Assembly: GCF_001194135.2 (NCBI RefSeq)
Contig: NC_069005.1
Span: forward strand, 20,389,652-20,429,952
Source: Octopus bimaculoides
Lineage: Eukaryota
Direction: 5' to 3'
DNA: 40,301 nucleotides
The notes beneath the pieces were generated by a model. It did not search any database. It saw nothing but the letters and a program-made list of their open reading frames with translations, and was not told the origin of the DNA. Positions 883 to 40,301 of this stretch are shown here, piece by piece (positions within the stretch are counted from its first letter, which is position 1; the number at the start of each line of letters is the position of its first letter). A program made the position numbers and the translations under genes.

Positions 883-1453
883 CATTATTTCACTTAAACT
901 TACATTTACAACCAACTGTTTATATGTGTGCACTCTCATGTGCTTATATTTATTTATATCATCATACTTATGTAAATATAATTTCAACAGATTCATACGG
1001 GGAAAAAACTTAACACGATTCTCCCTCCTCTTAAATTACATTAGCTTTAAACTGATAATAAAATTTTAACCAATTATTCATAATAAAAATCTAATAAACC
1101 ATTAATCCTATCCAATTTCACTTGAAATGCCATCGGGTTTGAAAAATATTTAAAATCACACCAACCAATTGAATTTAACTGATCAAAAGGGATCTATATC
1201 ACTTTTTTTTTTTAGGGGTGATGAATAATTAATAGTGTAAACATTTACGTGTGTGTATGTATGTATGTATATATTTGTAGGTGTATATGTGTATGTATGT
1301 GTATATATATATGTGTGTGTGTGTGTATATATGCATATATATGCATGCATAGGTGTAAGTACAGGTGTGACGATATTTTGTGCATATATATGTGAATGCG
1401 TGCAAATGTATATAACTAATTGAGAATGTCCCCCCCCCAGCATGTGTGTATGT

Positions 1454-2007
1454 NNNNNNNNNNNNNNNNNNNNNNNNNNNNNNNNNNNNNNNNNNNNNNN
1501 NNNNNNNNNNNNNNNNNNNNNNNNNNNNNNNNNNNNNNNNNNNNNNNNNNNNNNNNNNNNNNNNNNNNNNNNNNNNNNNNNNNNNNNNNNNNNNNNNNNN
1601 NNNNNNNNNNNNNNNNNNNNNNNNNNNNNNNNNNNNNNNNNNNNNNNNNNNNNNNNNNNNNNNNNNNNNNNNNNNNNNNNNNNNNNNNNNNNNNNNNNNN
1701 NNNNNNNNNNNNNNNNNNNNNNNNNNNNNNNNNNNNNNNNNNNNNNNNNNNNNNNNNNNNNNNNNNNNNNNNNNNNNNNNNNNNNNNNNNNNNNNNNNNN
1801 NNNNNNNNNNNNNNNNNNNNNNNNNNNNNNNNNNNNNNNNNNNNNNNNNNNNNNNNNNNNNNNNNNNNNNNNNNNNNNNNNNNNNNNNNNNNNNNNNNNN
1901 NNNNNNNNNNNNNNNNNNNNNNNNNNNNNNNNNNNNNNNNNNNNNNNNNNNNNNNNNNNNNNNNNNNNNNNNNNNNNNNNNNNNNNNNNNNNNNNNNNNN
2001 NNNNNNN
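1454..2007. other. Assembly gap (about 554 N) flanked by (TG)/(TA) microsatellite
   Basis: Run of N. ORF-track entries spanning it are artefacts. Confidence 1.
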
Positions 2008-7567: not shown

Positions 7568-7945
7568 AAAACAATATAACAGTTAAGAAGTTCCCTTTAC
7601 AACCACGTGGTTTCAGGTTGAGTCTCACAGCACAGCACCTTGAGCAAGTGTCTTCTACTATAGCCCTGGGCCAACCAGTGCCTTGTGAGTGAATTTGTTA
7701 GCTGGAAATTGTGTGGAAGTCAATCGTATACATGTGTATATCTTTAGTCTGTGTTTGTTACATCACTACCACCTCTTGACAACCAGTGTTGGTTTGCCTA
7801 TGTTCCTCTAATTCAGAAATCCAGCAGTGGAGACTGCTAAAGTAATTACTAAACTTAAAGTACTGAGGTCAATTGGTTCAAGAAACCCTTCAAGACAATG
7901 CCTGATAATGGCTGCAGTCCAATGACCGAAAAAAGGAAAAGATAC
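7568..7945 (+). mobile_element. SINE family 1, diverged full-length copy
   Basis: GAGCAAGTGTCTTCTACTATAGCCCTGGGCC...GCTGCAGTCCAATGACCGAAA. Confidence 0.75.
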
Positions 7946-9959: not shown

Positions 9960-10390
9960 ATCATTGCTAGCAACAAAATGTTTACTTGGCAACCCTCATT
10001 AGTACCAGTGTCACAAAGAAAAAGCACCCCGCACATACTGTAAAGTAGTTGATGTAAACCTTGCAGCTTGTCAGGTCCTCTGAAATTATCCAGCCCATGC
10101 CAGCATGGAAAGTGGACAATAAATGATGATGATGATGATTTGTGTACAAAATGTGATGTTAAATGGTAATGAAATATAGGTGCTGAACATGGAAGATATG
10201 CAAAGCTGGAACAAAATGCGGTAAGCATGTGCTGTTGGATGAATAATGTTAGTGTGCCTGAATGACAAAGCACAAATGAGCTGAGAGAAAAATTTGGGGT
10301 TTTTAAAGGAATTACATGTGTGCAAGAGAAGAGATTATACTGGTACAAACATGTAATGTGTATCAAAGTTCACAGTTGGATAAGTGCAAA
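9960..10390 (+). mobile_element. RTE 3' tail followed by an RTE ORF2 C-terminal fragment
   Basis: CCCATGCCAGCATGGAAAG...(GAT)n at 10095-10140, then sequence similar to 25620-25820 (NELREKFG...QEKRLYWYKHVM). Confidence 0.65.
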
Positions 10391-21410: not shown

Positions 21411-22122
21411 GGGATGCATTTTGAAACATATGAAATGCTTTCAAAATGTCATTATTTGGTTTGAATTCAATATTACAAATTATATATCTATCTATATACA
21501 CACACACATACATAAGCAACTATCTACCTATATACACATGTTTAAATATTTTACTTTTATACACACTCACATCGTATTTACTGGAGTACAATGCCATCTT
21601 ATAAATTGTGCAATCCTTACTTTTTCACCTTAACATCAATAATATATTTTAGTTTTTTTTTCTTCTACACTCGAGTATAATGCTACCCCTCTGTTTTGTA
21701 CTAAATTTCTCGCCTCACACAAAAGTAAATATGGTATCTATTTTCCAAAATGATTTGTGTTGACAAAATAGTTAGAGCATTACTAAGATAAAATATTTTG
21801 TGGTATTATCGCTCTGAGTGGATTGATTTCAAATCTTGCTGAGATCAACTTAACATTTCATCCACTCCAGAATCAATTTAATCATCTATATCCCTTCCCT
21901 CACAAATGTGTTGTACCTGCGATAGAAATGATTATCATTGTCATTAACGATCCTTTATCCTTCCATCGTTAATTAAAAAAAATAAGGTACTTAATAAAGT
22001 ACTAAGGTCTGTTTAGAACGACATTACTTGTTTCTTTTAGAACTATTGGAAATCGTTTAAAAATTTATAATAGCAATAAATTTAGTTTTAAATATTAGTA
22101 AAAAAAAAAAAAAGTTTCTTAC

Positions 22123-22231
22123 CTAAAAATTTGACGATGTGTCGGCTGGCCCGAAGAAGTTGGATAACTTCTATGTGGCCTTGGTCAGTAATTGCAGGGA
22201 ATAAATACGTGGAATCACCGAAAAATGTCAT
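22123..22231 (-). CDS. GLTP: Glycolipid transfer protein (GLTP-domain) gene, first coding exon (36 aa plus 1 nt, phase 1)
   Basis: MTFFGDSTYLFPAITDQGHIEVIQLLRASRHIVKFL resembles GLTP/FAPP2 GLTP-domain N-termini (TFF..., I..FL.A...IV..LD). Acceptor CTCTTCGTTACCAG|A-ATG and strong donor TTAG|GTAAGA. The phase-1 intron falls just before the conserved Asp, as I recall for human GLTP exon 1. Orthology (GLTP versus PLEKHA8-type) rests on one exon plus synteny. Confidence 0.8.
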
Positions 22232-22358
22232 TCTGGTAACGAAGAGCTGTCGTTGTTTGTATTGTTAAGTCATATGTATATATTCACACCTATATATGTA
22301 TAAACCTCCTCTCCCTCTCTATGTATGTATGTGTGTGTGTCTATATATATAGTCTTAC

Positions 22359-22705
22359 AGTATATTACTGGTTATAGCATGTAAACTGGTCAGAATGTTA
22401 TACACACCGTGATTTTTCGTCCTAATAATCTTCTGGTTTTTGCCTTCTTTGAAATATGTTTTTCGGATTGTTAATCACAATAGACATGGGTGGTTTGGGT
22501 TTTTGTCTACCTTTTCTATCTCTCCAGATTTCTTTGCCGACTTGTGGCTACGTTTCTTAGTTTTACTGGAGTTCCGACTGAGCACAGAGTCTGTTTGTTC
22601 GTAGTCTTGAAGTTTTTTTGTTTTTTTTTCTATCTATTATTTATTTTGTACTTTTCTCGTCTCGTCCGTCTGATTCGGCTTTTAACCAATACGGTAGACA
22701 ACTGC
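22359..22705 (-). other. Probable non-coding first exon of the GLTP-like gene
   Basis: Donor ATACT|GTAAGA at 22359, with an alternative AAG|GTAGAC at 22511. CpG-retaining unique sequence and an Inr-like GGCAGTTG near 22705. The TSS is not determinable. Confidence 0.5.
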
Positions 22706-23050
22706 CTGTGAAAGCATAATAGATAAAAGAATGTAAAGTAGTTATATATATCAAATGATAAATATGGTATACAACGTACTACTACTATCTATTAAGAAAA
22801 AGAGAACTCGATACTTATATTGATAAAAAGTTTAGTGGGATTTGGCACCTCACAAGTGACACTTATTCATCCCAGATGGGAATCTCCGGGCGATAATTAT
22901 ATATATATATAAATTAAGCGCTAAGCTAATACATTTGTTAAAACTTGTCCCCCGCGCGTAGTCTTCTTTGTGCTTATTACCATGTGTTGCGAGATAAATG
23001 GATGGTGTGTATAATAAGCCCACGTTAAAGTCGTGGGCCAGTCTGTCTTA
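22700..23050 (-). promoter_or_regulatory. Putative GLTP proximal promoter region
   Basis: TE-free sequence with retained CpGs (CCCGCGCGTAG, CCCACG...CGTGGG) directly upstream of the inferred first exon. Confidence 0.4.
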
Positions 23051-24091
23051 TGGGTTGTATTAAGAACTTACTCCAGCTGTGTTCTTCCTTTTTTTAAATT
23101 AAAGATGAAGTATGCATTTTAAGGAAATGTGGCTGCTATTTCTAACATGTCAAGTGACAAGCAGAGACATCTACGTTACCTTGAGGGTGTGTGTATATGA
23201 AATTCTACACGCTTATATTATACAAAGAGTAACTGTTGGAGTATATTAAGGTAGCCAGATGTAAACATGTCAGAACAATGTAGATAGACTGGGCGTGTGT
23301 GTACGTATGTATGAAGACAGAAAAACAGACGGATAGATAAACAGATAGGTAGGTAGACAAAGATAGTTAATAAAACAATTAGACAGATACAAATAAGTAG
23401 GCAGACACAGATCGATGTTTACTTAATGCTTCCTTAATATTTTGCCAACCTGTTTTACAAAGTATCCCTGAAGGGGTTTGGTATCTGATAGGACAGCACC
23501 AAATCACATGAAACATTATCCGAATATATCCAATGTGTTAACCTACGTTTGAAACAAAGGAAGATATTCACAGAAATAGTAATACAAAATAACGTAAACG
23601 AGAGAAGGGGAATACCTCTTTCGTGAAAGAATGGGTTGTAAAAATGGGTGGTGCCGGTTCGTAAGGGTTAAAAGGAGGAAGAGGAGAAAAGTGAAAGAAA
23701 GGGAGATATAGTAAAATAACAATGGGAGAAAGAGAGAGAAAGTAAACTTATACAGTTAAGGAGTGAGGGAAGAGTAACAGGCATTTAGATATACCAATAT
23801 AATAAGGATGGATGGGAAGCAGAGATAGAAGCAAAGGAAATAAGAGAGTAAGAGGTGAAATTAAAATATAAATAGGCACAGTGGGAGAAGAGAGTAGCTA
23901 TAACAGCTTTAATAGACGAGACAAGAAGAATGGAATATATATTGGAGAGCTTTACAGCCTCTAAAGTTACATACATACATACAACAAGAGGATGGAATTA
24001 ACAGGTTTTACAAATACATTTGTTTCAGTGCAGTGTGGTAACAGCCGCAAGTTGCTGAGTTTTTCCGTCTCATACTATTTATCGGTTACCA

Positions 24092-24424
24092 TTTACTTGA
24101 TTCAGTCATTAGACTACAGTCGTGCTGGGTCAACGCCGTGATGAACTTTAAGTCGAATGAATCGACCCAGTATTAATTTTTAAAAAGACTGGTACTTATT
24201 TTATTGCTTTCTTTTTCGCCGAACCGCTATGTTACGGGGACGTAAATAAACCAACACCGGTTGCCAACCGGTGATGGGGACAAAAACACGCACACATATA
24301 TCGATTACGGGCTTCTTTTAGTTTCCGTCTACCAAATCCACTGACAAGGTGTTAAGCAGTGGAACTGAACCTGGAACCATGCAGTTGGGATGTAAGCTTC
24401 TTACCACACAGCCATGACTGCGTT
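24092..24424 (-). mobile_element. SINE family 1, full-length CpG-retaining copy
   Basis: GCCGAACCGCTATGTTACGGGGACG...GTTTCCGTCTACCAAATCCAC...CTTACCACACAGCC. Confidence 0.85.
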
Positions 24425-24769
24425 TATTGCATAAACTATTTCATAAATAATTACATAAATAGATATGATCCAGCACCGGCTGTGTGCCAATACATCATCA
24501 GGTTGGTTGCTTTTTAAAGCACTGAATAAATTAATAAATAAATTCATATATTGTTATATTTTGGGATGGTCGGTTTTTTACTAGTCAAATAAATACACGT
24601 TCTTCACTCGTTTCTTTATTGTTCTTATTTTATCTTAAGTCCATCGTCTGGAAATCTTTCGTCACACCTGTAAACTCTTCAGCAACTCTTCCATCCCACG
24701 TGTCTCCTTCTGTTCTGTTTATCCATTCTGTCTTTTTATGATGTATATCCTTATCTGCACTGATGCTAC

Positions 24770-26452
24770 ATTTCTGGTAAGACACCTGCAGGAGAAATTC
24801 CTAGCCAAAGATAAACCTCTGTACATGGCTTTCGTTAACATGGAGAAAGCCTTTGATAGAGTACCCCGATCCCTTATCTGGTGATCAATGTAGAAACTAG
24901 AGATAGATGAGTGGTTGGTGAGAGCTGTACAAGCCATGTAAAGGGATGCTGTCAGTAAGGTGAGGGTTGGCAACGAGTATAGTGAAGAATTCTAGGTAGA
25001 TGTTTGGGTTCACCAAGGATCAGTCCTCAGCCTTCTCTTGTTCATCATAGTCCTCCCGGCAATAATGGAGGAATTCCAGACAGGCTGCCTCTGGGAGCTC
25101 CTCTATGCTGACGACCTTGCTCTAATAGCTGAATCACTACTTGAACTAGAGGAAAGGTTTCAAGTGTGGAAGCAAGGTCTAAAATCAGAGGAACTTGGAG
25201 TCAATCTAGCAAAAAACCAAAGTCTTAGTAAGTAAGAAGCAGACAAATCATAAATCCCTTCAGGTATGGCCCTACTCAATCTGCAGAAAAGTAGGTAGAA
25301 ACTCCATAAGATGTACCCGGTGTAAGCTATGGACTGAGAAGATAGTTTTTGTGTGTGGCAGATGCACAGGGACAATAAATACCAAAGATATACAGGAAAC
25401 AGATTCCATCACATGCCAGAGTGAAAAACTAGTAGTTGATAGCTTCCATTACATAAGTGATCAAGTCAGTAGCGGAGATGGATACTGTGAGAGTGTGGCT
25501 GCTAGAATAAGAATAGGGTGGATAAAGTTCAGAGAGCTCCTACCTCTGCTGGTAACAAAGGGCCTCTTGCTCAGAGTGAAAGGTAGACTGTATGATGCCT
25601 GTGTACGAACAACCATGTTACATAGCAGTGAAACATGGGCTGTGACTGCCGAGGACATGCATAGGCTTGAAAGAAATGGTGCTAGTATGCTCTGCTGGAT
25701 GGGTAATGTCAGTGTACATGACAGAGTGCAAGCACCCTGAGAGAAAAGTTGGACATAAGAAACATCAAATGTGCAAGAGAGACAACTGCACTGGTATGGT
25801 CATGTGTTGCATATGGATGAGGACAGCTGTGTGGAGAAGTGTCACACCCTAACAGTAGAGGGCGCCTGTGGAAGAGATAGACCCAGAAAGACCTGGGATG
25901 AAGTGGTGAAGCACGAACTTTAAATGTTGGGCTTCACAGAGACAATGACAAGTGACCGATACGTTTGGAGATGTGCTGTGCTTCAGGAGACCTGGATAGC
26001 TAAGTGAGATCGTATCTGTGGCCAATGCCAGTGTTGCATAAGTGGCCCATTTAAAAGTACCCTTCAATCGCTGGGCAATATGCTGTGCTTGAGAAGACCT
26101 GCTGAGTCAAGTGAAATTGTTGTCGTGGCCAATGCCAATGCCATGTGACTGGCACCATTCGAAGTGACCGATGCCCATACTGCTTGACTAGCTCCCATGC
26201 TGTCAGCATGTCAAAAGCACTATTCGAGTGTGGTCATTGTTAGTACCACCTGATTAACTCCTGTGTGGGTAGCACGTAAAAAGCACCTACTACACTCTCA
26301 GAGTGGTTGGCGTTAGGAAGGGCATCCAGCTATAGAAAACTCGCCAGAACTGATTGGAGCCTGGCACAGCCTTCTGGCTTGCCAGTCCTCAGTCAAACTG
26401 TTCACCCCATGCTAGTATGGAAAGCGGATGTTAAACGATGATGATGGTGATG

Positions 26453-26459
<7 letters not shown>
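24770..26459 (+). mobile_element. 5'-truncated RTE LINE (RT, C-terminus and 3' UTR with (GAT)n tail)
   Basis: YMAFVNMEKAFDRVPR, HQGSVLS, WELLYADDLALIAES, KGRLYDACVRTTMLHSSETWA. Premature stops. Tail at 26436-26459. Confidence 0.93.
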
Positions 26460-26486
<27 letters not shown>

Positions 26487-26525
26487 AGTAAAAAGTAGCA
26501 AAATTTGAAACACTTTATTATTATT

Positions 26526-26610
26526 AAGGTGGCAAGCTGGCAGAAACCTTAGCATGCCAAGCAAGATGCTTAGCTGCATTTTGTCTGTTTTTACATTCTG
26601 AGTTCAAACC
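26526..26610 (+). mobile_element. SINE family 2 head fragment
   Basis: AAGGTGGCAAGCTGGCAGAAACCTTAGC...GAGTTCAAA. Confidence 0.75.
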
Positions 26611-26619
26611 TTCATTGAC

Positions 26620-27002
26620 TTTTTAAAGATCCACTAGGAAAGTGAGGGTGGAATGGAAAGTTCTCCATGCCAGTGAATTTGTTAAAAGATGGGTAACTGT
26701 GGGAAAATGGTTAGAGTAAATGGGCCTGTAGATTGGAGAGCATGAGAAAGGCCTCAGGCTTTTGGTGGTTGGGGGTAATCCTGGATCTGTGAGCCTCCTT
26801 GATTGGCCCTCGGTGGAGTTTATCCTGTATAAGGAGGACTGCACTATTCATGTTATCATACTTTGTATACTGTGTATACTTTTATTGCATTTCACTGCTT
26901 TTCCCATTTCTTTCTTATCCTTTATACAAATCCCCACACAAATTGTCATCTGTCCTAGTGATAACCCTACTTCTTCTGAGGCCCTTGTGGGTAATAAAAG
27001 AA

Positions 27003-27003
<1 letters not shown>
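26620..27003 (+). mobile_element. Unclassified non-LTR 3' end with AATAAA and (TTA)n tail
   Basis: Shares GGGTAATCCT.GATCT...CCTTGATTGGC...GGACTGCA and the terminal AATAAAAGAAAT with 31560-31830. Confidence 0.5.
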
Positions 27004-27035
<32 letters not shown>

Positions 27036-27577
27036 GAGTGAGAGAGCAGTGCATGCTGTCAAAGTGATTCTGAGGTCAAATATACGAAGCCCAGTATATC
27101 TATCATGACTAACTGTCTGATAGGGATACACCAGGCACAACCATATGTGCGCGACATGGTGATCTTATATCAAGATTAACAGCACATGACCTTGCAGGTG
27201 GGGCCCAGTTAGAATTTTCTTCAGGTTGAGTAACCCATCCCACCCAAAAGATCCCTGAATAAGGTTTGTTTAAGGGTGAACAAAACACCCATGTTTCCAG
27301 AGGTAAATTATTCAAACCCCAAAGACTTCCTCTCAACACATGGCTACAATGTTCCCCTACTTCTTCTGCTCATGATCAGAGATGCACATATCGTCAGCCA
27401 CTAAGGAATATGCTCAACTGGTTATGGTCAAACAACTGACAAGCAAATCTGCAGTGTTGAGCAGAATATTTGCTGTAACCCATCTTTTATACCAAGACAA
27501 AACAATGTACATGATAACACTTCCAATCAGTGAAGACCAGAAGCCATGAGAGGCACTGCCTGGTACTGCATCAGGGC

Positions 27578-27582
<5 letters not shown>
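27036..27582. mobile_element. Unclassified interspersed element of about 545 bp embedded in (TTA)n
   Basis: Sharp boundaries with (TTA)n on both sides and no convincing ORF. The mobile-element call is inferred from this context. Confidence 0.5.
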
Positions 27583-27607
<25 letters not shown>

Positions 27608-27608
<1 letters not shown>

Positions 27609-28320
27609 GAAGCCAGTGAGCTGGTAGAATCGTTGGCATGCTGGACGAAATGCTTAGCAGTATTTTGCCTGTCACTATGTTACTGAATTCAAATTCTGCT
27701 GAGGTCGACTTTGCCTTTTCATTAAGTAGCAGTGAAACACTGGGGTCAATGTAATCAGCTAACACCCTCCCGCAAAATTTCAGGCCTTGTGCCTTTAGTA
27801 GAAAGGCTTATTATTATAAAGGCAGCGAGCTGGCAGAATCGTTAGCATGCCAGGCAAAATGCTTAGTGGCATTTCGTTTGTCCTTATGTTCTGAGTTCTT
27901 ATGTTCTAAGCACGCCAAGCAAAATGTTTAGTGGTATTTCATCTGTCCTTATGCGCTGCGGTCGACTTTGCCTTTTATCCTTTCAGGGTTGATAATTAAG
28001 TACCAGTTGAACGTTAGGCTTGATGCAAATGACTTACTCCTCCCTCGAAATTGCTAGCCTTATGCCAACATTTGAAACCATTATTATTATTATTATTATT
28101 AACAATAGTAATGGTAACAAACTTATTTGTTTATTTACTAGGTTTAACAACAATTTCGACCTGGCAGAATTATTAGGGCATCGGATAAAATGTCTTGCGG
28201 TATTTGTTTTGACTCTTTACATTCCGAGTTCAAACTCTATCGAGGTCACATTTGCATATCATCCTCTCAGGGTTAATAAAGTAAAGTCCCATTCAAGTCC
28301 TGGGGTCGAAAATTGTTGTT
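27608..28320 (+). mobile_element. Cluster of about four SINE family 2 copies/fragments separated by (TTA)n
   Basis: Repeated head GAGCTGGCAGAATCGTTAGC and body GAGGTCGACTTTGCC at about 27610, 27820, 27910 and 28155. Confidence 0.8.
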
Positions 28321-28349
28321 GGCTTTGTACCTCATCTCAACTAAACAAC

Positions 28350-28563
28350 ATTAACACGTCCGTAATCAAGTCGTTCGTCTGAGTTCCTCGGCCATCATTA
28401 TTTGACAATAATGTCTGGAGTTGAATATAATGTTGACTGTTGCTAACCAACTCAAACATTAATTTTCGTGTTTTTGAACAAATAATTTCTGAAGTTACGT
28501 CAACAGTTTATTTAAAAACTTGACAGAAATTTTAAAAAGAACGAGCGCAAAACACGATTCTAG
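28350..28563 (+). other. Probable non-coding first exon of TCHP
   Basis: CpG-retaining unique sequence ending in a consensus donor TAG|GTAAGT at 28563, with no ATG-initiated frame reaching the donor. Start position is approximate. Confidence 0.55.
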
Positions 28564-28620
28564 GTAAGTTACAAAAAGGATATTTATATCTTAATATTAT
28601 TCCTCGAAGATTTTATACTG

Positions 28621-28812
28621 ATTTCAAATTTTGACACAAGGCCAGTAATTTCGGAGGAGGGAACAAGTCGGTTACAACGATCCCCAGTGTTCATCTGGTA
28701 CTTATTTTATTGACTTCGAAAGGATGAAAGGAAAAGTTGACCTCGGCGGAATTTGACGGAATCAGACGTCAAGACGGACGAAATGTCGCTCAGCATTTTG
28801 TCCGGCCGCTTT
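28621..28812 (-). mobile_element. SINE family 2, CpG-retaining copy
   Basis: TTTCAAATTTTGACACAAGGCCAG...GACCTCGGCGGAATTTG...GACGGACGAAATG. Confidence 0.8.
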
Positions 28813-29168
28813 AAACTCTAAGTTTTCATGTTAAACACAACAAAAGACAAAAGGTATGTTATTAAGATAACGGCAGTTATAAATTATATTGTTACAGAAA
28901 TTTGTTCAAACTAGTGATGGTTTGAGGCTGACATTCAGTTAATAAAGTTCGTTTAACTTCGAGCCAACGTTGATTATCCACAGCTACGATCATCCCGTCT
29001 TATTACAGGTATCTTGGACAACGTTATTAACCTATAGTTTCCTTATTTAAGGTAGTTGGGAGTGAGTTGAGACATTCAGCTGCTATTTTTGGAATCTCGG
29101 AAACGATGTAGAGGTCATTCGTGAGTAATTTGCTGCTTGTTCAAATTGTTAGAAATATATCTCTGCAA

Positions 29169-29471
29169 CAGATGTTCTCAGCCGTTTTTTCATTATCTAT
29201 GGACCCCTTTGATTACTATTTTATTCTAGTGGACCCTCGTAGTCATTCAATGTTTAAAAACTAGTTCTATAGAAACTCCTTTCAAAATTCCTATTTTGTT
29301 TCTCACATATTAAAACTTGAACTATAGCTGTTTCTTGCAACACATACCAGTACATACATCTAAAGCAAATTTTTTTCAGGGGCCTTGAAAATACTATTGT
29401 AGATCCCCAATTTACTATTTTGTTGCGTCGACCCCCACGAAATCCATATGGACTCCGGTTGAGAACCACTG
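29169..29471. mobile_element. hAT (Charlie-like) MITE
   Basis: TIRs CAGATGTTCTCAGCC and GGTTGAGAACCACTG. The 8-bp flanks CTCTGCAA and CTCTATGC share only CTCT, so the TSD is degraded. Confidence 0.7.
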
Positions 29472-29694
29472 CTCTATGCATCATGACTTACTTGAGGCAT
29501 ACCTATACAAGTTGTGGCCCTCTCCGTTTTTGTATCCTCATGACTTTCAGAAAAAAAAATGGATATTTATTAATGAAATTTTCTACAAATACCTTTCAGA
29601 TAGTGTAGATTACGATTATATCGGAATTTGGTATGGAACAAAAAAATGGTTGGTACCGAACGCATGCATACTGACATATGTCATATATATATAT

Positions 29695-29865
29695 TGATTT
29701 CAATTTTTGGCACATGGTCAGCAATTCTGGGGGAGGGTATAAGTCGATTACATCAACCCTAGTGCTCAGCTGGTACCTTTTTTATCGACCCTAGTGGCAT
29801 TTGGACACTGAACATACAGACGGACGAAATGTTGCTGTGCTAACAATTCTGCCAGCTCGCCGACC
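29695..29865 (-). mobile_element. SINE family 2 copy
   Basis: TTTCAATTTTTGGCACATGGTCAGC...TTCTGCCAGCTCGCCG. A further fragment lies at about 30100-30205. Confidence 0.75.
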
Positions 29866-29877
29866 TCACATCACATA

Positions 29878-30097
29878 TACGAAGGGGTGCTGAAAAGTTC
29901 TTGACTTTGGATAAAAGAAAATACAGGAAGATCAGTTAATTATGATTTTATTCAACATATTCCCGTCTTAGATTCACACACTTATTGCAGTGGTCCTTTA
30001 GTTTTTCTAAGCCCTGTAAAAGAACTCGGAAGGTTGGTTCTCCAACCAAGCCTTTTGTGATACCCATAATGCTAGGAACTTTTTAGCACCTCCTTGT
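29878..30097 (-). mobile_element. Mariner-derived MITE (same family as 3678-3887)
   Basis: TA CGAAGGGGTGCTGAAAAGTTC...GGAACTTTTTAGCACC. The interior is the reverse complement of the first copy. Confidence 0.82.
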
Positions 30098-30387
30098 TTA
30101 TTGATTTCAAATTTTGACACAAGGCTAGCAATTCGGGGGGGAGGGGCATAAATAAATTACATCCACCCTAGTGTCTAGTTGGTACTTATTTTATCGACCA
30201 TGAAAGGGTGACTGTGATTTTTTGGGGGGCTTTCCACAAATAATCCTCAATGGTCTCCTTTTAGAAATTTTTTCTTTGTTTCAATTATATTTTTATGTTT
30301 TGTTATTTTTCTTGTTTACATGTTTTTTTATGCAATCCCACAATGTATCATCCTACACAATCCTCAATATGTTTGTTAATGCTTCTG

Positions 30388-30431
<44 letters not shown>

Positions 30432-30434
30432 GTT

Positions 30435-30650
30435 GAGTAGGTAGAATCAATAGTGAGTCGAATGAAATTCTTAGTAGTATTTCTCCCAGCTCTTTACATT
30501 CTGGGTCCAAATTTGAGCTCAACTTTGCTTTTCCTCCTTTCAGGGTCAATAAAATAAAGTACCAGTTGAGCACTGGGGTTGATGTAATCAACTTATCCCT
30601 TCCCTTAAGATTGCTGGCCTTGTGCCTACAGTAGAAAAGATTATTATTAT
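30435..30650 (+). mobile_element. SINE family 2 copy between (TTA)n tracts
   Basis: CAACTTTGCTTTTCCTCCTTTCAGGGTCAATAAAATAAAGTACCAG...GTAGAAAAGATTATTA. Confidence 0.78.
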
Positions 30651-30652
30651 TA

Positions 30653-30654
<2 letters not shown>

Positions 30655-30710
<56 letters not shown>
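30655..30710. repeat. (CT)n microsatellite
   Basis: Direct reading. Confidence 0.95.
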
Positions 30711-30714
<4 letters not shown>

Positions 30715-31050
30715 CCACCCTGGTCACTCTCACTTGATCTTCTGTAGTGTAAGTAGCCTGGTAGTTCTACAAGGGGAAACTATTCTGGCCCCTTCTCTCA
30801 TACTTTTAACCTCTTGTCTTTTTCCTTCTCGTCTTCCATCTCTACAGAGGAAATCTTAGTCTTGCAAGCTGCATGGTGACCTCATCAGTGCTGTCACAAA
30901 AAAAGAAGCACCTTGTACATGTAAAGTGTGGAGGAGCATCTAGTTAAAACAATGTACAATGCTAAAGCAGATGTTGAAGTATGATGCAGTCTTTGGAGGC
31001 TACTGGATCCTGTCAGACCCTCCAGTCCATTCCAGCATGGAACATGAACG
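30711..31050 (+). mobile_element. Diverged RTE-type 3' UTR/tail
   Basis: GTCTTGCAAG...GGTGACC and CCATTCCAGCATGGAACATGAACGTT, similar to the reverse complement of 6120-6530. Confidence 0.5.
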
Positions 31051-31054
31051 TTCA

Positions 31055-31425
31055 ATAATCCTTTCTACTATGGGCACAAAGTCTGATATTTTGGGGGAGG
31101 AGGTAGTTGATTACATTGACACCAGTACTCAACTGGTACTTATTTTATTGACTCCCTGAAAGGGTGAAAGGCAAAGTTGACCTTGGTAGAATTTGAACTC
31201 AGAACGTGAAGACGGACAACATGCTGCCTTAATGGACGCCTTAATAATAAGAATAATGATGAAGTGCAAGGTTAGAAATTTGGTGGGAAGGGGGCAGTCA
31301 GTTATACTGACTTCAGTATTTGACTGGTATCTTATTTTGTTGACCCTGGAAGGGTGAAAGCAAAGTTGAAGCTAGTTGGATTTGAAATCAAAACATAGAG
31401 AGCCTTAATTTAAATACTGCGAGGA
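31055..31425 (-). mobile_element. Two SINE family 2 copies
   Basis: GAAAGGGTGAAAGGCAAAGTTGACCTTGG...AATTTGAACTCAGAAC twice. Further fragments at about 32350-32660. Confidence 0.75.
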
Positions 31426-31559
31426 ATTTTGCATCATGTTTAAGGTTTATAATTTTGGCATGACAAAAAATATTCAGAGAGAACATGGTTAATGGAATTA
31501 ACTGATACTATGAACCTATTCTAAGCATGCAGCTTTAGATTGAAGAACAACAGTTGGTG

Positions 31560-31830
31560 AGAACTTGTGCTCCTGGTTGTCAGGGTAATCCTAGATCTTG
31601 TGGTAGTTCCTTGATTGGCTCTAGTTGGAGGTTCTCTTCCCTCAAGTAGGACTGCATCATAGAATGGGGTCACATATTTGGTATACTTTATGTATTTTAT
31701 GCCTCGTTTCCCCCCTCTTTCTCCCCCCCCCTATCTTTTATTTAACCCCTCCCCCACGCATGTGAAAATTACTGTCTTTGTAATATCACTCATCTGATAT
31801 CCCTGCTGTAAATAAAAGAAATAATCATCA
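31560..31830 (+). mobile_element. Unclassified non-LTR 3' end related to 26620-27003
   Basis: Shared motifs. Ends in AATAAAAGAAAT followed by (CAT)/(CAC)/(CCT) triplet repeats. Confidence 0.45.
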
Positions 31831-32839
31831 TCTTTATCACCACCACTACCACCACCACCATCCTCCTCCTCCTCCTCCTCATCATCACCATCATCATCAT
31901 CATCAATGATAATGATAATGGGATTTTGTGGGTCGAAATGATCAAAAAGCAACAAAATATATGAAATTGTAGGACAGATGTTTCAATGGTTGCTAAACCA
32001 CAAATACATGTTGGATGTATTGTTCTAAAATATGGGGCAGAGCAGCTGACCGCACAAGTTCTATAAATACATACAAAGTGTATATAGGCACCTCAGCAAA
32101 CACATTACATCTGACACAAAAGCCAATCTAGCTAATAGATATAGAAATAAGACAATTTTTCTTTCTAAATAATAGTTTTCAAACCCACTAAATTGGCACA
32201 GAAGTTGAGTGCTAATGTATTTAATACAGGGAACATTAGCTAAAAATAATTGTTGATAGATAGATAGGTAAGATAGATAGAGAGATAAGATTGATAAATA
32301 GATTGATGGATAAAGAGTTGGGCAAGCAGTCAGTGGTTAGCCAACTAAATTGATCCTGGTTCTTCATTAGTATTTTACTTTATTGGCCCTGGAAACATGC
32401 AAAGCAAAGTTGAGGCCTTGGTGGGATTTGAACTCAGAACATAAAGAGATTGAAGAAATACTGTAATGCTTTTTGTTCAGCACTCTAACAATTCTTCTTA
32501 CATAAGTGCAAGGCCAGAACTTTTGTGGGATTTTTGGTGGGATTGTTGAATTCATTAACCCTGGTATTTGGCTGGTACTTTATTTTATTGATCCCAGGAA
32601 AACGAGGTCTAAAGAAGACATCAGCAATGTTTGAAATGAGAAACCTCAAAGCATTTTATCTGTTGTTGTTGCCCCCTTATGTCTACCATTAACCAGATTT
32701 TAGATGAGCCTTCTACTTACATACTTGACCTGTTAGAAATAACAACCAAATTGCCCTCAAATCACATCCCACAGCTGTGATTTTCAACCTTTTTTGTAAG
32801 GGGCTAAAAGTGTTATGACACACCATCAGCTTTTTAAAA

Positions 32840-33090
32840 GTTTTCATCATCATCACACATCCATTTTCCATGCTGGCATGAGTTGGTCAGTTTGACAGGA
32901 GGTGGCTAGCCAGAGAACTTTACCAAGTTACAGTATCTGCTTTGGAATGGTTTTCATACTAGGATGCCCTTCTTAACACTACTCATTTTACAGTGTGTAC
33001 TGGGTGCTTTTTATGTAGCACCAGCACCAGTGAGGTTACCTAGTAACTTGCAAGTCAGGACCCTTCAACTGAGGTGGTACAGTATTGAGG
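32840..33090 (-). mobile_element. RTE 3' tail copy
   Basis: CCATGCTGGCATGAG...GGATGCCCTTCTTAACAC...GTAACTTGCAAG. Confidence 0.75.
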
Positions 33091-33808
33091 GAAGTGACTA
33101 TGCTTTTTAAAAAGTTTTATTATATAAAAACCAAAACAAAAATTAAAACTGCTTTTAAACGAAGACAGGCGTATGCATTGCACTTTGCTGCAAAGGATTG
33201 CACATGCAGTTCAAGTTTTCTAAATGTCTTGACATTTTCTGACTCCTCACAACTGTATAGCATACAACTATACCACAGTACAGTAGAGAAGATCTTTCAG
33301 AAAAAAACCAGGACAATAGTGTTTATATTTTACAAAAAGTAAACTGAAATGAACATGGCTGGAATACTCTTGATAATCGGACAAATAATAACATCACTAT
33401 TCTAAACATTAATGGTAATAACAATGATGGTCGCTCTTGTTATTTTGATGGATGAGTGTTTGAAAGAGAGAATTTAAAGAAAAAAGTGGGGAAAAAGAGA
33501 AAACTTTTAAAAAGAAAAGCCCAGAAGAAGCTGCATCCATTTGTGATGGATGCGTGAATGTGATTTGAATCTAGGTATGGATTTTGCTATGAAGTTGCAA
33601 CGGGGACACTAATGATTTTGATTTTGTCTGTCCTTTGTGAAAGTCATTGCCTAGATTGAACTGCATGGCATAAAATGTGTCATGATGCATTGAAACATTT
33701 TGGATAATAATAACAATAATAATAGCAAAAGCACTCGGAGAGTGCAAACCTCTGCCAAGGTAATACCATGACACTCTCAACAATTAGCCAGAGATGATTT
33801 TTAAAATG

Positions 33809-34343
33809 GACAAGTGACCAGGACCTTTGGAGATATGCTGTACTTGAGAAGACCTGGCAAGCCAAGTGAGACCATAACTGTGGCCTATACCAGTGCAGCA
33901 TAACCGGCCCGTTTAAGAGTACCCTTCAATCATTGGACAATAAACTGCGCTTGCGAAGACCTGTTGAGGCAAGTGAAGTCATTGTTGTGGCCGATGACAG
34001 TACTGCCTGATTGGTACCTATGCCAGTGGAACGTTAAAAGCACCATTTGAGCATGATTGCTGCCAGGGCTACCTGACTGGCTCCTGAGCCGGTGGCACAT
34101 AAAAAACACCATTTGAGTGTGGTTGTTGCCAGTACTGCCTGACTGGCCCTTGTGCTGGTGGCACGTAAAAGCACCCACTATACTCTTGGAGTGGTTAGTG
34201 TTAGGAAGGGCATCCAGCTGTAGAAACTTTGCCAGATCAGATTGGAGCCTGGTGCAGCCTTCTGGTTCACCAGCCCTCAGTCTAACTGTCCAACCCATGC
34301 CAGCATGGAAAGCGGACATTAAACAATGATGATGATGATGATG
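33809..34343 (+). mobile_element. RTE 3' end (ORF end plus UTR plus (GAT)n) inserted in the HINE
   Basis: Matches 25950-26459 (GCTGTACTTGAGAAGACC...GGAAGGGCATCCAGC...(GAT)n). Confidence 0.88.
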
Positions 34344-34509
34344 GTGAGAATATCTGAAATAAACTCGACTGCTCCCACAGGCGAGAATACTAAAAATGAA
34401 CCCAACTGCCCTGAAAAATTAAGTGAGAAAACCGGAAAAACAATCCAGAATCCTTGTCTGGTACCTGATCAATCCCAATGGTAGTCATGGAATGTGAAGG
34501 TGGATGTGT

Positions 34510-34760
34510 GAGCTATGTTTGTAATGCTGTGTGTGTGTCATCTGCAGTGGGAACAGGGACAGTTTTCTCTATGAAGGCCTTTTTTAATCTATCCACTGAT
34601 ATAGTGTCTTTATGACCATTAAGGTCTATAATGAAAAATTTACCTATTTGTGAAAGAAAACAGAAAGGACCTGCATACAGTGTTGTTAATGGAGGTTTAA
34701 CAACATCGTTGCGCACAAAAATGTAAGTCCAAGTAGTAAAGCTTCTTTCAAGGCAGAGCT
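34510..34760 (-). mobile_element. Ty3/Gypsy integrase C-terminal (GPY/F) fragment
   Basis: YIFVRNDVVKPPLTTLYAGPF...GHKDTISVDRLKKAF matches the pattern VFVR.D....PL...Y.GPF...DTVS.DRLKPA. Confidence 0.8.
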
Positions 34761-35320
34761 AGAAATGCAATTGTCAAGTAGGAAAGAGGTTTTAAACAGC
34801 AGCGAAATATTCAAAATTGGTAAAATTAAAAATTGTTGAGGATAAATTAAATTTATTGTTACTGGATATGTTAGTGTTATTTCATTTCTGAATGGTTTTG
34901 TCTATGTAGTTCAATTTCTTTATCCATCAGTTTCTACTAAGCTAGAGACATGAGTAAAATTAAGAGAAACAACAATAAAACTTTGGAAACAGCAACGCCG
35001 CCATGATTTATGTGGAAACCATGAACGTGCTTTCAAGGGAGATAATCAGAGAAAGACTTGAAAGTGAACATAAGATTGTAATACTTCATGTAAAGTAAAT
35101 CTAACAAATAATCCAGAATCCTTGTCTGGTACTGGATTGATCCCAAATTCTAATCAGTTTGTGCCAGTCATGAGGCCAAACATTCCTGAAAGTTTCATCC
35201 GAATCCATCCAGCGGTTTTTGAGATATCTTGTCCATGGACAAACAAACAAACACAACTGAAAACAATGTCTCCACCTTCGCTAAGGCTGAGGTAATAATA
35301 ATAGTAAACACTACAAAATT

Positions 35321-35372
35321 ATGTTCATACCAGTAAACAAGTATGTTCATACCTGTTTACTGGTATGAACAT
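35321..35372. repeat. Fold-back inverted repeat, 25-bp arms, 2-nt loop
   Basis: ATGTTCATACCAGTAAACAAGTATG-TT-CATACCTGTTTACTGGTATGAACAT, 1 mismatch. Confidence 0.95.
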
Positions 35373-35905
35373 CATCCTGAGCCAGTCGTTGAAAGTAAAA
35401 ATGTCACTGTCCTCTGAGATTTTCCAATCAACACTGACAGAACAATCCAGGCTAATCGACTAGACATAGTTATTAAGAACAAGGAAGAAAATACTTGTAG
35501 ACTAATAGATGTAAGTGTTTCCTCTGATAAAAATATATCTGTAAAGGAATTTAACAAATTAAGTAACTATAAGGACCTGGAAATTGAAATACAAAAGATG
35601 TGACATCTTAAAGCAAGAACTGTTTCTGTTATGCCCTAGGTATGAAGAAAAAGGGATATCCGAAACATCTAGATAAAATCCCAGGAGAACCATGTCTTAG
35701 TGAAATGCAAAAGATTGTGCTGACAAGTACTGCCCACATCCTTAGAAAAACCCTATCAATTTAAATGTCTGTGTTACATGAAGATATTTCACTACTGCCC
35801 CTGCCACTCCTCAAGCTTTCAGTCATACTGTAGCATCTTTTCTTCACTCACCCTAGGATGCTGGGTGAGTCTCGGCAAGTAATTGTAACAAACATGCAGA
35901 TTATA
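35360..35905 (+). mobile_element. R4/Dong-clade non-LTR retrotransposon 3' end (restriction-like endonuclease)
   Basis: WYEHHPEPVVES..VL*DFPINTDRTIQANRLDIVI...IDVSV..D.NI..KE..K..YKDLEIEI...QKIVLTSTAHILRKTL* (stop about 35763). 3' UTR hairpin at 35846-35870. Ends at TAA repeats. Confidence 0.88.
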
Positions 35906-35909
35906 TTAA

Positions 35910-37047
35910 TAATCCTTTCTAGTATAGGCACAAGGCCTGAAATCTGGGGGCAAGGAACTAGTCAATTATATCAACCCCAGTACTCAACTGGTACTTATGT
36001 TTTCAACCCCAAAAGGAGAAAAGGTAAACTTGAACTCAGAATATAAAGCTGGACAAAATACTGCCAAATTTTTTGCCAGGCATGCTAACGATTCTGCCAG
36101 CTCACTGTCATGTACAATAACAAAGGATTTCAAATTTTGGCACAAGGCCAGCAGGTTCAGGAAGGGAATAAGTCAGTTACATCAACACTAGTGCTCTCTA
36201 TTGGTACTTAATTTATCGACCCTGAAAGGGTGGAAGGCTAAGTCAACCTTGGCAGAATTTGAACTAAGAACGTAAAGACAGACAAGGCAATGAGCAGGTA
36301 GAATCATTAGCATGCCATATAATAATAATATAATAATAATAATAATAATAATAATCCTTTCTGTTATAGGCACAAGGCCTGAAATTTTGGAGGCGGGGTC
36401 TAGTCGATTACATGGATCCCAGTACACAATTGGTACGTGCTTTTTGATCCTGAAAGGATGAAAAGCAAAGGTGGTCTCAGCAGAATTTGAACTCAGAACA
36501 AAATACCTCTAAGCATTTTGTTCAGTGTACTAATGATTTTGCCAGCTTGCTGCCTTAATAATAATGATAATAATAATAATAATAATAATGATAATAATAA
36601 TGGTTTCAAATTTTGGCACAGGGCAAGCTGTTTTTGAGAGTTGGGGGAAGCCGGTTACATTGACACCGGTTTTTCACTTGGACTTTATTTTTATTGACCC
36701 CAAAAGGATGTAAGGCAAAGTTAACCTTGGCAGAATTTGAACTCAGAATGAAAAGACTGGTGAAATGCTGCTAAGTATTTTACCCAGCATGTTAATGATT
36801 CTGCCATCTGACTGCCTTAATAATAATAATAATAATTCTTTCTAATATAGGCACAAGGCCTGAAATATGAGGTGAGGGGTTAGTAGATTACATCAACCCC
36901 AGTGTTTAACTGGTGCTTATTTTATCAACCCTGAAAGGATGAAAGGCAAAGTTGACATCTGCAGAATTTGAACTCAGAACATAAATATGTATGAAAAACC
37001 ACTAAGTAGTTTGTCCGTTGTGCTAATGATTCTGCCAGATCATTGCC

Positions 37048-37090
<43 letters not shown>

Positions 37091-37095
37091 TAATC
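35910..37095 (-). mobile_element. Array of five SINE family 2 copies interleaved with (TAA)n
   Basis: Copies at about 35910-36107, 36125-36290, 36355-36556, 36603-36817 and 36838-37050. Confidence 0.88.
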
Positions 37096-37262
37096 TGTTA
37101 ACATTGTAGGAAGATGTTTGATAATATATGTGTGCAAACCATTCAATACCATTTTTTTTTCTACAGCATCAGTGAAAAAAAGAAAGAAACCCCTTGTGTC
37201 TGTTTTCTACTTTTCTCAGTTGGTGTCATTCCAATTTAACCCATTAAACTAGTCAATCAACC

Positions 37263-37456
37263 ATGGCACTTCCTACACTGTCTAGCCGCTCATGGCCTGC
37301 CCTACAGAACATCTATATGTACACATGGAATCAACGAAGATGTCGAAATGAAGATATGAGACAAAGCTGTTTAAATACAGACCGTTTTTTCCAGACAGGA
37401 AGGTTAAAAGCTGAAAAAATGCAAAAATGGACTTCTGATAAGTATTACCGTAAAAG
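37263..37456 (+). CDS. TCHP: Trichoplein keratin filament-binding protein, first coding exon (64 aa plus 2 nt, phase 2); exon starts at 37220
   Basis: MALPTLSSRSW...MRQ...RFFQ...K...WTSDKYYRK-S aligns to the human TCHP N-terminus as recalled (MALPTLPSYW...LRQ...RYFR...K...WSS..SYQRS) with a 2-aa offset. Acceptor TTTTCTACTTTTCTCAG|, in-frame upstream TAA, Kozak ACCATGG, donor AAG|GTAGAA. Confidence 0.85.
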
Positions 37457-37984
37457 GTAGAATTACCTGTTTGCAAAAAAAACTTAATGCTTGACTAACA
37501 AAAGCTGTCCCCAACCACCCATTCCTCTATGTCCTCACCCACCCGCCAGCACACTAACCTTTCTCTTTTATTTTCATTTCTTATTCTTGGCGCTTTAAAA
37601 TAAAAAAAAAAAAATGCATGGAATTCATCATGGGACAGTAATGTAACTCCTAAATGCAAAATTTCTGGCTTATGTAAATAAGGCTTTGAATTGAATGCTG
37701 GGAATTAGTTTGACATTGCCTGTAACTAACATTTGCTTCCATAGGAGCAGTGGTTCTTTATCTCCTCTCAAAGCGCAGTTCCCCATTTCACTGTATGCCC
37801 CCTCCACCACTCCCCTTGAATTTTGCAACTGCTCTCCTGCCCTTCCCTGAATAATTTTCCTGAAACTCAAAATTTAATTTTGTGCTTTGGCTTCAGTCAT
37901 GTTTCTGCTCAATTAATAACACAATGTCTTATATTCTAATCCGTTCAAAGATTTCTATTTTTGAAAATGTGTTTAAAATATAAA

Positions 37985-38160
37985 GCATGCCTGTGTTGTT
38001 AAGAAGCTTACTTTGTAAACTTGTAGTTTCAGGTTCAGTCCCACTGCATGACACCTTGGGCAAGTGTCTTTTGGGTCAACTAATATCTCGTATGTAAATC
38101 TGGTAGATAGAAGCCTGTTGTATGTACACGCACACGTGCGTGCACACACAGGCATCCACT
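37985..38160 (+). mobile_element. SINE family 1, 5' part, diverged
   Basis: AGGTTCAGTCCCACTGCATGACACCTTGGGCAAGTGTCTT. Confidence 0.75.
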
Positions 38161-38440
38161 GCATTATCACTACCTCAGCTTACAGAATTTCGTGCTTATG
38201 GAAATTATAAAGTATGACCATTAATTTTGGGATCCTGTATGTAATTTCACTTTTACAGAAACGGGTATTGCATAGTTTTAAATTGTTAACAATTTAAAAC
38301 TATACTCCCATCTTAGCTCATTGGTCATTAGCGTTTTAATTAAGGTCAAAGTTAATAGTTAATGATTTGGAAAACTATCTGCAAGTTACTCACATGCATG
38401 CACACAAATACGCATGTTTATATTTTGTACATAATGTGAG

Positions 38441-38501
<61 letters not shown>

Positions 38502-38514
38502 GTTTATACATATA

Positions 38515-39536
38515 CGAATGACAGGGATCTTCTCTATGTGGCTGGTGACTTCAATGGACATGTTGGACAACATGCAGGGGGCTTCCATGGTTTTGGTTCC
38601 CGCAATGGGGAGGAAACCAGGCTGCTGGAGTTCTGTGATGCAAATGATCTTATGGTTTGCAATACTAACTTCAGGAAACCTGCCAGTCACCTACCGATCT
38701 GGTAGACACACTAGCCAAATTGACTACATCCTTGCCAGAAAAAGGGAAAGATGGCTGCTTATAAATGCCAAAACCTTCCCAGGCGAAGAATATACCCCAC
38801 AACATAGACTAGTAGTTAACAACTTCAGGATCAGGGCTAAATGGATACCCAGAAGATGACAGCATGGAGGAGAAGGGTCTGGAAGCTTAAAGATCCTGCA
38901 AATGGACAGAGATTTAGAGACATATTACTTGAAGCTTTTGACGAAATAGAGGAGGATATAGTATCACATGATGTGAAGACATCTAGAGGTTTCTACAGAA
39001 CAACCTGCTGAGGGCCACTGACCAGATCTATAGATGGTGCAAAGTCCCCTCTCGATCCAAGGTAACGTGGTGGTGGAACAATGGGTTGACAGGGCTATCA
39101 GACAAAACAAAGAGGCTTGGAGGGACTGGAAGAACGGTGGTAGCAGGGAATTGTATCAGACTGCCAGAAGGGAAGGTAAGCGACAGGTTTATTTAGCCAG
39201 ATGGGAAGCTGATAAGAAAAAATTTGCCAATGTTCTGTGCCGTGAGGACCAATGACTTGAGGTATTTCGTGTTGCAAGACAGTGTGTGAGACAGAATTGT
39301 GATGTCGTGGGAGAGAAATGTGTCCGCATGAATAATGGTTCACTTGCATTAAATGAGGCTGCAAAGAGAGGGGTTTGGAGATGCCACTATGAAAGGTTGC
39401 TAAATAAAGAGAATGAATGGGAGAAAGAGAGTCTGCTGAATGCCAACCCAACAGAGGGACCAGCTATCCAAATTGACAGTACTTTGGTAGATAAAGCAGT
39501 TAAGGGTATGCAGACGGGGAAAGCCCCTGACCCATC
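38515..39536 (+). mobile_element. RTE LINE internal fragment (endonuclease C-half to start of RT)
   Basis: VAGDFNGHVG, LLEFCDANDLMVCNTNFRK, TYRSG..TSQIDYIL, QHRLVV, KAVKGMQTGKAPDPS. Frameshifted. Confidence 0.9.
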
Positions 39537-40243
39537 GTACTCCAAAGGTAAAGGTGATTATGACACTAATACATATAATTATAATAATAACAATATTAAT
39601 TGAGGTTATAAACTCAAAAAAAGTGAAATACCTCTGAATAAATAATGTACTCCAAACAATAAAAAGTAAACAAAACTGCTACAAATAATTGTAGTATAAA
39701 TAAACATTTTAAAACCTTGATTCAACTGTAATACTAGTAAAGGTGATTATAAAACTAGAATTTAATTCGACTTAAAAAGGAACACCATGACCTTCAGCTG
39801 AATACCAATGCAGGAAGCTTGTTTGAATTAGTTCACTTTGAAAATGTCGTAAGTGATGGACCTTTGATGAAATTGCAATGACTAGGATGCATAATTACAT
39901 ATAGAGCAATGTGCAGTTGCTGCAGTAGAAACATATGTTGATCATTGTTATATATACTGTAGAAAATTTTTTAATAAAAAAGTCTTGGATGTGAATAAAT
40001 CTCCACTCTCCTCTTGGTTTTCAATAATATACATATGTATGTATTTGTATCTATATATATATATATATATATATAATTATAAAATCTGGTAATTAGTCAT
40101 ATATTAATTAATATCGATTAATTATCAGGAGGCCAGCGCATCTAAAGAATCAAAGAGATTCAGAAATATTATCTGCAATCTCAGGGGATTAAGGTACATT
40201 TTAAAAAAATAACGTCGACCACTAACGTGGACAATTAATGCGC

Positions 40244-40301
40244 TAGAAATAGATCACAGCTTGTGTCTATTAAGATAGACACAAGATGTGATCTATTTCT
40301 A
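40244..40301. repeat. Near-perfect palindrome, arms at least 27 bp, 4-nt loop, reaching the window edge
   Basis: TAGAAATAGATCACAGCTTGTGTCTAT-TAAG-ATAGACACAAGATGTGATCTATTTCTA, 1 mismatch. Confidence 0.95.

Follow-up and report, generated by a model that had tools for sequence, protein, structure and literature searches.

A head-to-head GLTP-TCHP gene pair in Octopus bimaculoides, probably inherited from its common ancestor with vertebrates

Can two unrelated genes have stood side by side, facing away from each other, since the ancestor that octopus shares with vertebrates, and what would have kept them together? The question is raised by a stretch of 40,301 nucleotides from Octopus bimaculoides (NCBI RefSeq assembly GCF_001194135.2, contig NC_069005.1, positions 20,389,652 to 20,429,952 of the forward strand), hereafter called the window, in which a reading made from the sequence alone had placed a GLTP-like first coding exon on the minus strand and a TCHP first coding exon on the plus strand. 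GLTP is the cytosolic glycolipid transfer protein and TCHP is trichoplein, a coiled-coil regulator of centrioles and cilia. The analysis reported here indicates that two real and unrelated genes, GLTP (-) and TCHP (+), have their 5' ends in the window and point away from each other, and that shared ancestry is a far more likely source of this arrangement than chance, the pair going back to an ancestor that octopus and vertebrates share. The two exons lie head-to-head, with 15,031 bp from one start codon to the other:

22123 to 22231, minus strand: GLTP first coding exon; ATG at 22231, last base at 22123, 109 nt (36 codons plus 1 nt), ending in phase 1.
37263 to 37456, plus strand: very probable TCHP first coding exon, encoding MALPTL...YYRK plus AG; 194 nt (64 codons plus 2 nt), ending in phase 2.

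Identity of the two first coding exons

The minus-strand exon belongs to GLTP. Its peptide is identical at 36 of 36 positions to residues 1-36 of the annotated 'glycolipid transfer protein [Octopus bimaculoides]' (P0271), a PF08718 protein of 206 aa to which NCBI gives the name GLTP, and the exon limits proposed from the sequence alone, 22231 to 22123, proved to be exact. The exon is followed by the donor TTAG|GTAAGA, with the GT at 22122-22121. With its six coding exons the octopus gene extends over 40.6 kb, and since its intron 1 measures 28.3 kb, positions 1-22122 of the window consist entirely of that intron; exon 2 was located by tblastn of P0271 at position 38456 of the locus sequence L002, beyond the start of the window.

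In tblastn searches of the window the exon was detected via invertebrate GLTPs only. P0172 gave E 1e-7 at 48% identity, P0235 and P0215 matched as well, and several invertebrate GLTPs matched the octopus exon from their own first residue. A human GLTP query, which was verified to be identical to PDB 1SWX, detected neither exon 1 nor any other GLTP exon in the window, and in the protein search with human GLTP only vertebrates appeared among the matches listed. A vertebrate GLTP run against a library of representatives at 50% identity recovered many invertebrate GLTPs of ~200 aa, many of which begin MTxFF. Pfam gave no match for the exon peptide alone.

The family assignment was examined with the complete protein. 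A phmmer search of P0271 against the PDB returned human and bovine GLTP at 4e-28 (102 bits), PLEKHA8 at 8e-19 (72 bits) and CPTP at 5e-9, so that human GLTP is the top match by 30 bits over PLEKHA8 among paralogues with solved structures, a comparison that leaves out GLTPD2, for which there is no such structure. PLEKHA8, which the sequence-only reading had named as an example of an identity that would tell against it, is thus excluded. At 206 aa, P0271 also has the form of a stand-alone GLTP, for which about 206-209 aa and no PH domain are expected. In an alignment of 27 GLTPs, residues D49, N53, W93 and H137 (octopus numbering) are invariant and octopus K56 aligns with human K55. We take the residues of human GLTP that bind the glycolipid headgroup to be D48, N52, K55, W96 and H140, and by the alignment this presumed sugar-binding set of five positions appears to be kept in octopus GLTP.

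Intron 1 of GLTP is in phase 1, and gar, skate, reedfish and octopus all have it in one shared alignment column, with G|GTAAG at the boundary. The claim that phase and position are conserved was therefore borne out; the claim that the intron precedes the same Asp was wrong, since the codon that the intron interrupts reads G|AC (Asp) in the fishes and G|AA (Glu) in octopus.

As a separate observation, residues 8-29 of the GLTP exon peptide contain 'DQGHIEVIQLL', which resembles the ankyrin-repeat motif 'GH.EVV.LL'. In phmmer searches of the exon against designed repeat proteins, small whole-sequence E values were the sum of many insignificant repeat matches, and the ankyrin and armadillo 'GH.EV..LL' matches of the exon in the PDB were rejected as artefacts, with per-domain E values of about 10^2-10^4.

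The plus-strand exon was assessed with a profile built from four vertebrate TCHP first-coding-exon peptides, those of gar, skate and reedfish, taken from genomic loci, and that of human. Searched over the 1328 stop-to-stop open reading frames (ORFs) of the window, the profile placed the ORF at 37263-37456 at the top with E 2.6e-5, the runner-up having E 0.18. The alignment spans profile positions 1-63, starting with the initiator Met and reaching the final codon ahead of the donor, and here too the proposed limits were exact, with the match running end to end. A tblastn search of the window with human TCHP found residues 1-62 at E 0.004. The opening MALPTL is common to octopus, gar and reedfish, and human TCHP presumably begins with it too. 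The exon measures 191 nt in gar, skate and reedfish as against 194 nt in octopus; in all of them it ends AG|GT in phase 2, and the intron follows 8 residues past a conserved Trp, so that the conservation of intron position and phase, claimed beforehand by comparison with human, holds in three fishes. In octopus the donor is AAAG|GTAGAA, with the GT at 37457-37458, and the start codon lies in the context aaccATGg. Ahead of it there is a polypyrimidine tract with an AG, and candidate acceptors end at 37166 (ttttttttctacag) or 37219. On the strength of these similarities we regard the exon as very probably the first coding exon of TCHP.

Gene order in vertebrates and the case for common ancestry

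The same divergent order was found in each of three fish genomes. In spotted gar the GLTP start codon is at 10001 (+) and the TCHP start codon at 7833 (-) of locus L001, head-to-head and 2.2 kb apart; in reedfish the two genes are head-to-head with 3.1 kb between start codons, and in thorny skate they are head-to-head with 9.0 kb between them, the skate neighbour being annotated with the TPH domain (PF13868). The TCHP products of gar and reedfish have no Pfam match on record. For human we take the strands to be head-to-head as well. A published set of TRPV4 neighbours built on the human template has GLTP and TCHP adjacent among its ten genes, and in the remaining gnathostomes of that survey all ten were likewise located there (PMC9664204). 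The sequence-only reading had asserted both adjacency and divergence in human: the adjacency is borne out by this study, and the head-to-head orientation is confirmed in gar, reedfish and skate.

That no other gene separates the octopus exons, as had been stated, also held. Public annotation shows no gene in the 10 kb upstream of octopus GLTP, and among the ORFs between the two exons only a reverse-transcriptase fragment was recognised. No homologue of TRPV4 or GIT2 was found in the octopus window.

What has been kept between octopus and vertebrates thus comprises gene identity, 5'-5' orientation, and intron position and phase at both first coding exons. For a specified gene to be the immediate divergent upstream neighbour of another in a genome of 2-3×10^4 genes, we estimate a chance probability of about 2-3×10^-5. 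Randomised gene orders give about 0.015 conserved pairs per genome (Irimia et al. 2012, PMC3514665). Taken together, these two figures make shared ancestry the best reading even with two lineages in hand, and it is on those two lineages and this probability argument that the proposed survival of the pair since the protostome-deuterostome split is based.

The spacer, its putative promoters and the surrounding sequence

The sequence between the exons can be divided by its observed-to-expected CpG ratio (CpG o/e) and its content of transposable elements (TEs), which include short and long interspersed nuclear elements (SINEs and LINEs):

21800 to 24500, no strand: CpG-preserved zone A, o/e about 0.7-1.7; GLTP exon 1 plus ~2.3 kb upstream, with a SINE copy at 24092-24422 that keeps its CpGs.
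24600 to 27600, no strand: CpG-poor block between the zones, o/e 0.24; partly TE-derived, with a LINE reverse-transcriptase fragment and multi-copy repeats.
27800 to 29200, plus strand: CpG-preserved zone B, o/e 1.0-1.5, the window maximum.
28564 to 37166, plus strand: putative intron in the 5' untranslated region (5'UTR) of TCHP; o/e 0.25 from about 29.7 kb, many SINEs and an array at 35900-37094.

Against a window median of 0.2 and a value of 0.16 in GLTP intron 1, the two zones reach 0.7-1.7, and they contain all twelve of the 400-bp windows with the highest CpG o/e in the 40-kb window. The same two zones are prominent across the 60-kb GLTP locus. In published octopus methylomes it is chiefly the bodies of genes with constitutive expression that are methylated, and one large class of genes is unmethylated at the transcription start site (TSS) (PMC9476566); it is because of this pattern that we read the two zones as unmethylated promoter islands. 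From its CpG content and position, zone A would be the unmethylated promoter and 5'UTR region of GLTP, and zone B would hold the TSS and a non-coding first exon of TCHP. Zone B contains unique sequence ending in CTAG|GTAAGT, a candidate exon end at 28563, with alternative GT donors at ~28853 and 29121; the earlier guess that TCHP has a non-coding first exon at around 28.4 kb fits this candidate. The TCHP start codon would then lie in a downstream, second exon.

In skate and reedfish the TCHP start codon has a separate CpG island 1-2.5 kb upstream of it, and the island positions suggest that both fishes share the TCHP layout of octopus. Gar is the only species in which CpG-rich sequence runs unbroken over the spacer, there of 2.2 kb. 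The distance of 5.6 kb between octopus TSSs given by the sequence-only reading must be taken as an estimate: it draws indirect support from the CpG zones, the start codons themselves being 15,031 bp apart. On the GLTP side, another cephalopod has a GLTP mRNA in which a non-coding first exon is followed by an intron of 937 nt and then by the exon with the ATG, as seen in transcript and genomic contigs, which implies that the octopus GLTP TSS may be upstream, beyond 22.7 kb:

386 to 525 and 1463 to 2020 of L003 (Logan contig ERR12921337_236201): GLTP exons of the other cephalopod, with transcripts L006-L008.

On genomic contigs of another cephalopod, the ORFs P0273 and P0274 run on into GLTP intron 1 and place it at the octopus position. 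Footprinting of the promoter region between octopus and another cephalopod showed the coding exon alone to be conserved, with no conserved non-coding elements found. A 36-kb contig of a third cephalopod contains GLTP exons 2-5, without exon 1 or TCHP. A metagenome scan for invertebrate GLTP gave 17 loci, mostly on contigs of 1-5 kb with one longer contig, and TCHP was found on none of them. Among the contigs seen, the 26.5-kb Ga0114919_10000693 (L020) carries two intronless GLTP-like genes in convergent orientation, at 1052-1576 (+) and 2185-1709 (-), which are 24-27% identical to human GLTP and are probably of protist or fungal source. In the literature searched, to which the pair table of Irimia et al. 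2012 did not belong, the pair is mentioned nowhere outside vertebrates, and the supplements of Robert 2022 mention neither GLTP nor TCHP.

The spacer itself is rich in mobile sequence. At least 37% of it is repeated within ~68 kb of local octopus sequence, the segment 25845-26494 having up to 47 local copies, and an RVT_1 match lies at 25038-25235, within a reverse-transcriptase fragment at 24738-25740. That the locus is rich in TEs, as the sequence-only reading held, is thereby supported. In both zones (24092-24422 and 28607-28806) old SINE copies with mutual identities of about 72-79% still have many of their CpGs, and copies of the 28607 type between 29.7 and 37 kb (29690-37017) are mostly stripped of them. 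The use of SINE CpG retention as a map of methylation history failed, there being too few copies and one intronic copy that retains its CpGs. A 66-bp tandem repeat (2.3 copies, 79% match) at 34022-34170 lies in a multi-copy element at 33809-34353.

The remainder of the window lies in the introns that flank the pair:

1 to 22122, minus strand: proximal 22 kb of GLTP intron 1; CpG o/e 0.16, TE-rich, with a gap of Ns at 1454-2007.
37457 to 40301, plus strand: start of the TCHP intron after the first coding exon; fragments resembling LINE endonuclease and reverse transcriptase.

Positions 2008-32231 are 100% identical to chromosome CM046625.1 of GCA_001194135.2. The run of Ns at 1454-2007 is an assembly gap within GLTP intron 1, and the copies beside it at 36-235 and 511-709 are 93% identical and represent one repeat. 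Within the intron that follows the TCHP exon, a search of the window ORFs with Pfam matched Exo_endo_phos_2 at 38367-38705 (E 0.002), and ORFs resembling a LINE endonuclease and the adjoining reverse-transcriptase linker occupy 38367-38859 and 39049-39603. Ten further ORFs elsewhere in the window had no Pfam match.

Retention of the pair and its place among known systems

How an ancestral pair of this kind would have been retained is the second part of the question. In the explanation that we favour, and which we hold with no more than even confidence, the ancestral pair was retained by cis-regulatory constraint. Each gene would have its own unmethylated promoter island, GLTP at about 21.8-24.5 kb and TCHP at about 27.8-29.2 kb; the short, promoter-dense spacer would behave as a unit in which breakpoints harm one or both promoters; and cis-regulatory constraint of the sort that characterises conserved 5'-5' pairs would keep GLTP and TCHP linked, with no functional relation between the two proteins being needed. 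A shared regulatory constraint on the two genes, which had been proposed from the sequence alone, is conjecture. A stronger version, according to which GLTP-TCHP is an obligate 5'-5' unit throughout Bilateria, and perhaps Eumetazoa, with promoters that share regulatory input, so coupling a gene for glycolipid transfer to a regulator of cilia and centrioles, and that coleoid reshuffling has left unbroken, seems to us doubtful.

Several observations weigh against the reading of GLTP and TCHP as an ancestral pair held by constraint. The lineages compared for the pair are two, vertebrates and one cephalopod. About 4-6 kb separate the two octopus CpG islands, and since at least 3 kb of this interval is CpG-poor and partly TE-derived, the spacing itself is not constrained; putative promoters at such a distance do not form a classical bidirectional promoter, and the spacer tolerates insertions. 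CpG depletion continues downstream of GLTP, and one SINE copy in a 3' GLTP intron (at about 46.6 kb of L002) keeps its CpGs, so that CpG o/e can mark transcription units only roughly. The literature searched gave no link between GLTP and TCHP, either functional or by co-expression. Identity of the TCHP exon to its vertebrate counterparts is no more than ~30%, and no further TCHP exon was detected in the window by tblastn with human TCHP, the exons of the TPH domain lying outside it. Finally, no protein sharing three 5-mers with the 64-aa TCHP peptide was found in a collection of 5.8 billion sequences, the same collection in which octopus GLTP is present.

Some of these points bear on whether TCHP is present at all, the 64-codon ORF at 37263-37456 being in that case a product of chance or a dead relic. 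To the missing 5-mer match and the missing second exon one may add that neither Pfam nor the PDB gave a match for the exon peptide and that its donor (AAG|GTAGAA) was graded moderate. We nevertheless consider this improbable, for the ORF stands at the top of 1328 by four orders of magnitude, aligns from Met1 as far as the donor with its phase preserved, opens with a MALPTL identical to that of gar and reedfish (and, as we take it, human), and lies at exactly the position and on exactly the strand that vertebrate synteny predicts; as for a relic, to remain recognisable over >500 million years would require selection. The absence of the exon from the public protein sets searched may point to a gap in the octopus annotation, in which the N-terminus of TCHP may be missing or mis-modelled. 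That cephalopods and vertebrates brought the genes head-to-head independently is more improbable still: nothing positive speaks for it, and it is opposed by a chance of about 10^-5 per gene, as we estimate it, and by the frequency of conserved pairs in randomised genomes cited above (about 0.015; PMC3514665).

The rival that has to be taken most seriously accepts the ancestral bilaterian pair and dispenses with selection: no breakpoint happened between the genes, and linkage survived neutrally. This is a real possibility, to which we would assign slightly less than even weight. The spacer, which has come to hold the start codons 15 kb apart and of which at least 37% consists of local repeats, with a LINE fragment besides, has evidently been free to change in length and content; the two CpG islands are separate; the literature searched gave no functional link; and out of thousands of ancestral adjacencies some would be expected to survive. 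On the other side, the published large-scale reorganisation of coleoid genomes should have left the survivors enriched for constrained pairs, and orientation has been conserved along with linkage, a feature that Irimia et al. take to be the mark of co-regulation (PMC3514665).

Known systems provide a frame for the pair. Conserved ancestral microsyntenic pairs (CAMPs), of which 54.8% are 5'-5' in human, have to be linked in four or more lineages to count as such (Irimia et al. 2012, Genome Res 22:2356; PMC3514665). Like GLTP-TCHP, CAMPs such as HSPE1-HSPD1 consist of unrelated genes that have been adjacent for >600 million years, with 5'-5' as the majority class. GLTP-TCHP differs from them in having been seen in two lineages where four are required, and in having its inferred TSSs kilobases apart rather than <1 kb. 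By the same token it is not a classical bidirectional promoter (TSSs <1 kb), since in octopus 15 kb separate its start codons and about 4-6 kb its CpG islands. Genomic regulatory blocks offer a likeness in that cis-regulatory elements would preserve the linkage; in contrast to such blocks, however, neither gene of the pair encodes a developmental transcription factor, and no conserved non-coding elements were found. The TRPV4 block (…FAM222A-GLTP-TCHP-GIT2…, PMC9664204) contains the pair, but comes from a survey of vertebrates only, which dealt with neither orientation nor invertebrates.

Among cephalopods, Schmidbaur et al. 2022 (PMC9023564) placed a PF08718 gene in a Euprymna cluster common to Octopus and Callistoctopus. 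This cluster, number 4415 (Euprymna Lachesis_group1:126741768-127087329), has seven genes and is cephalopod-only, its listing being RRM, TPR, TPR, beta-CASP, a gene without Pfam match, GLTP and B3/4 (PMC9023564). The gene without Pfam match beside GLTP could be TCHP, which is suggestive. The microsyntenies of that study differ from the present pair in kind, being novel and cephalopod-only, and in method, which requires three or more genes (PMC9023564).

Should the pair hold in more phyla, it would provide one well-resolved ancient 5'-5' example with its exon, phase and promoter-island architecture mapped, and it would rank among the few adjacencies to have survived cephalopod reorganisation, making it a handy test of selection on such survivors. 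GLTP-TCHP is an instance of known ancient 5'-5' microsynteny, fairly ordinary among such pairs and no new kind of biology.

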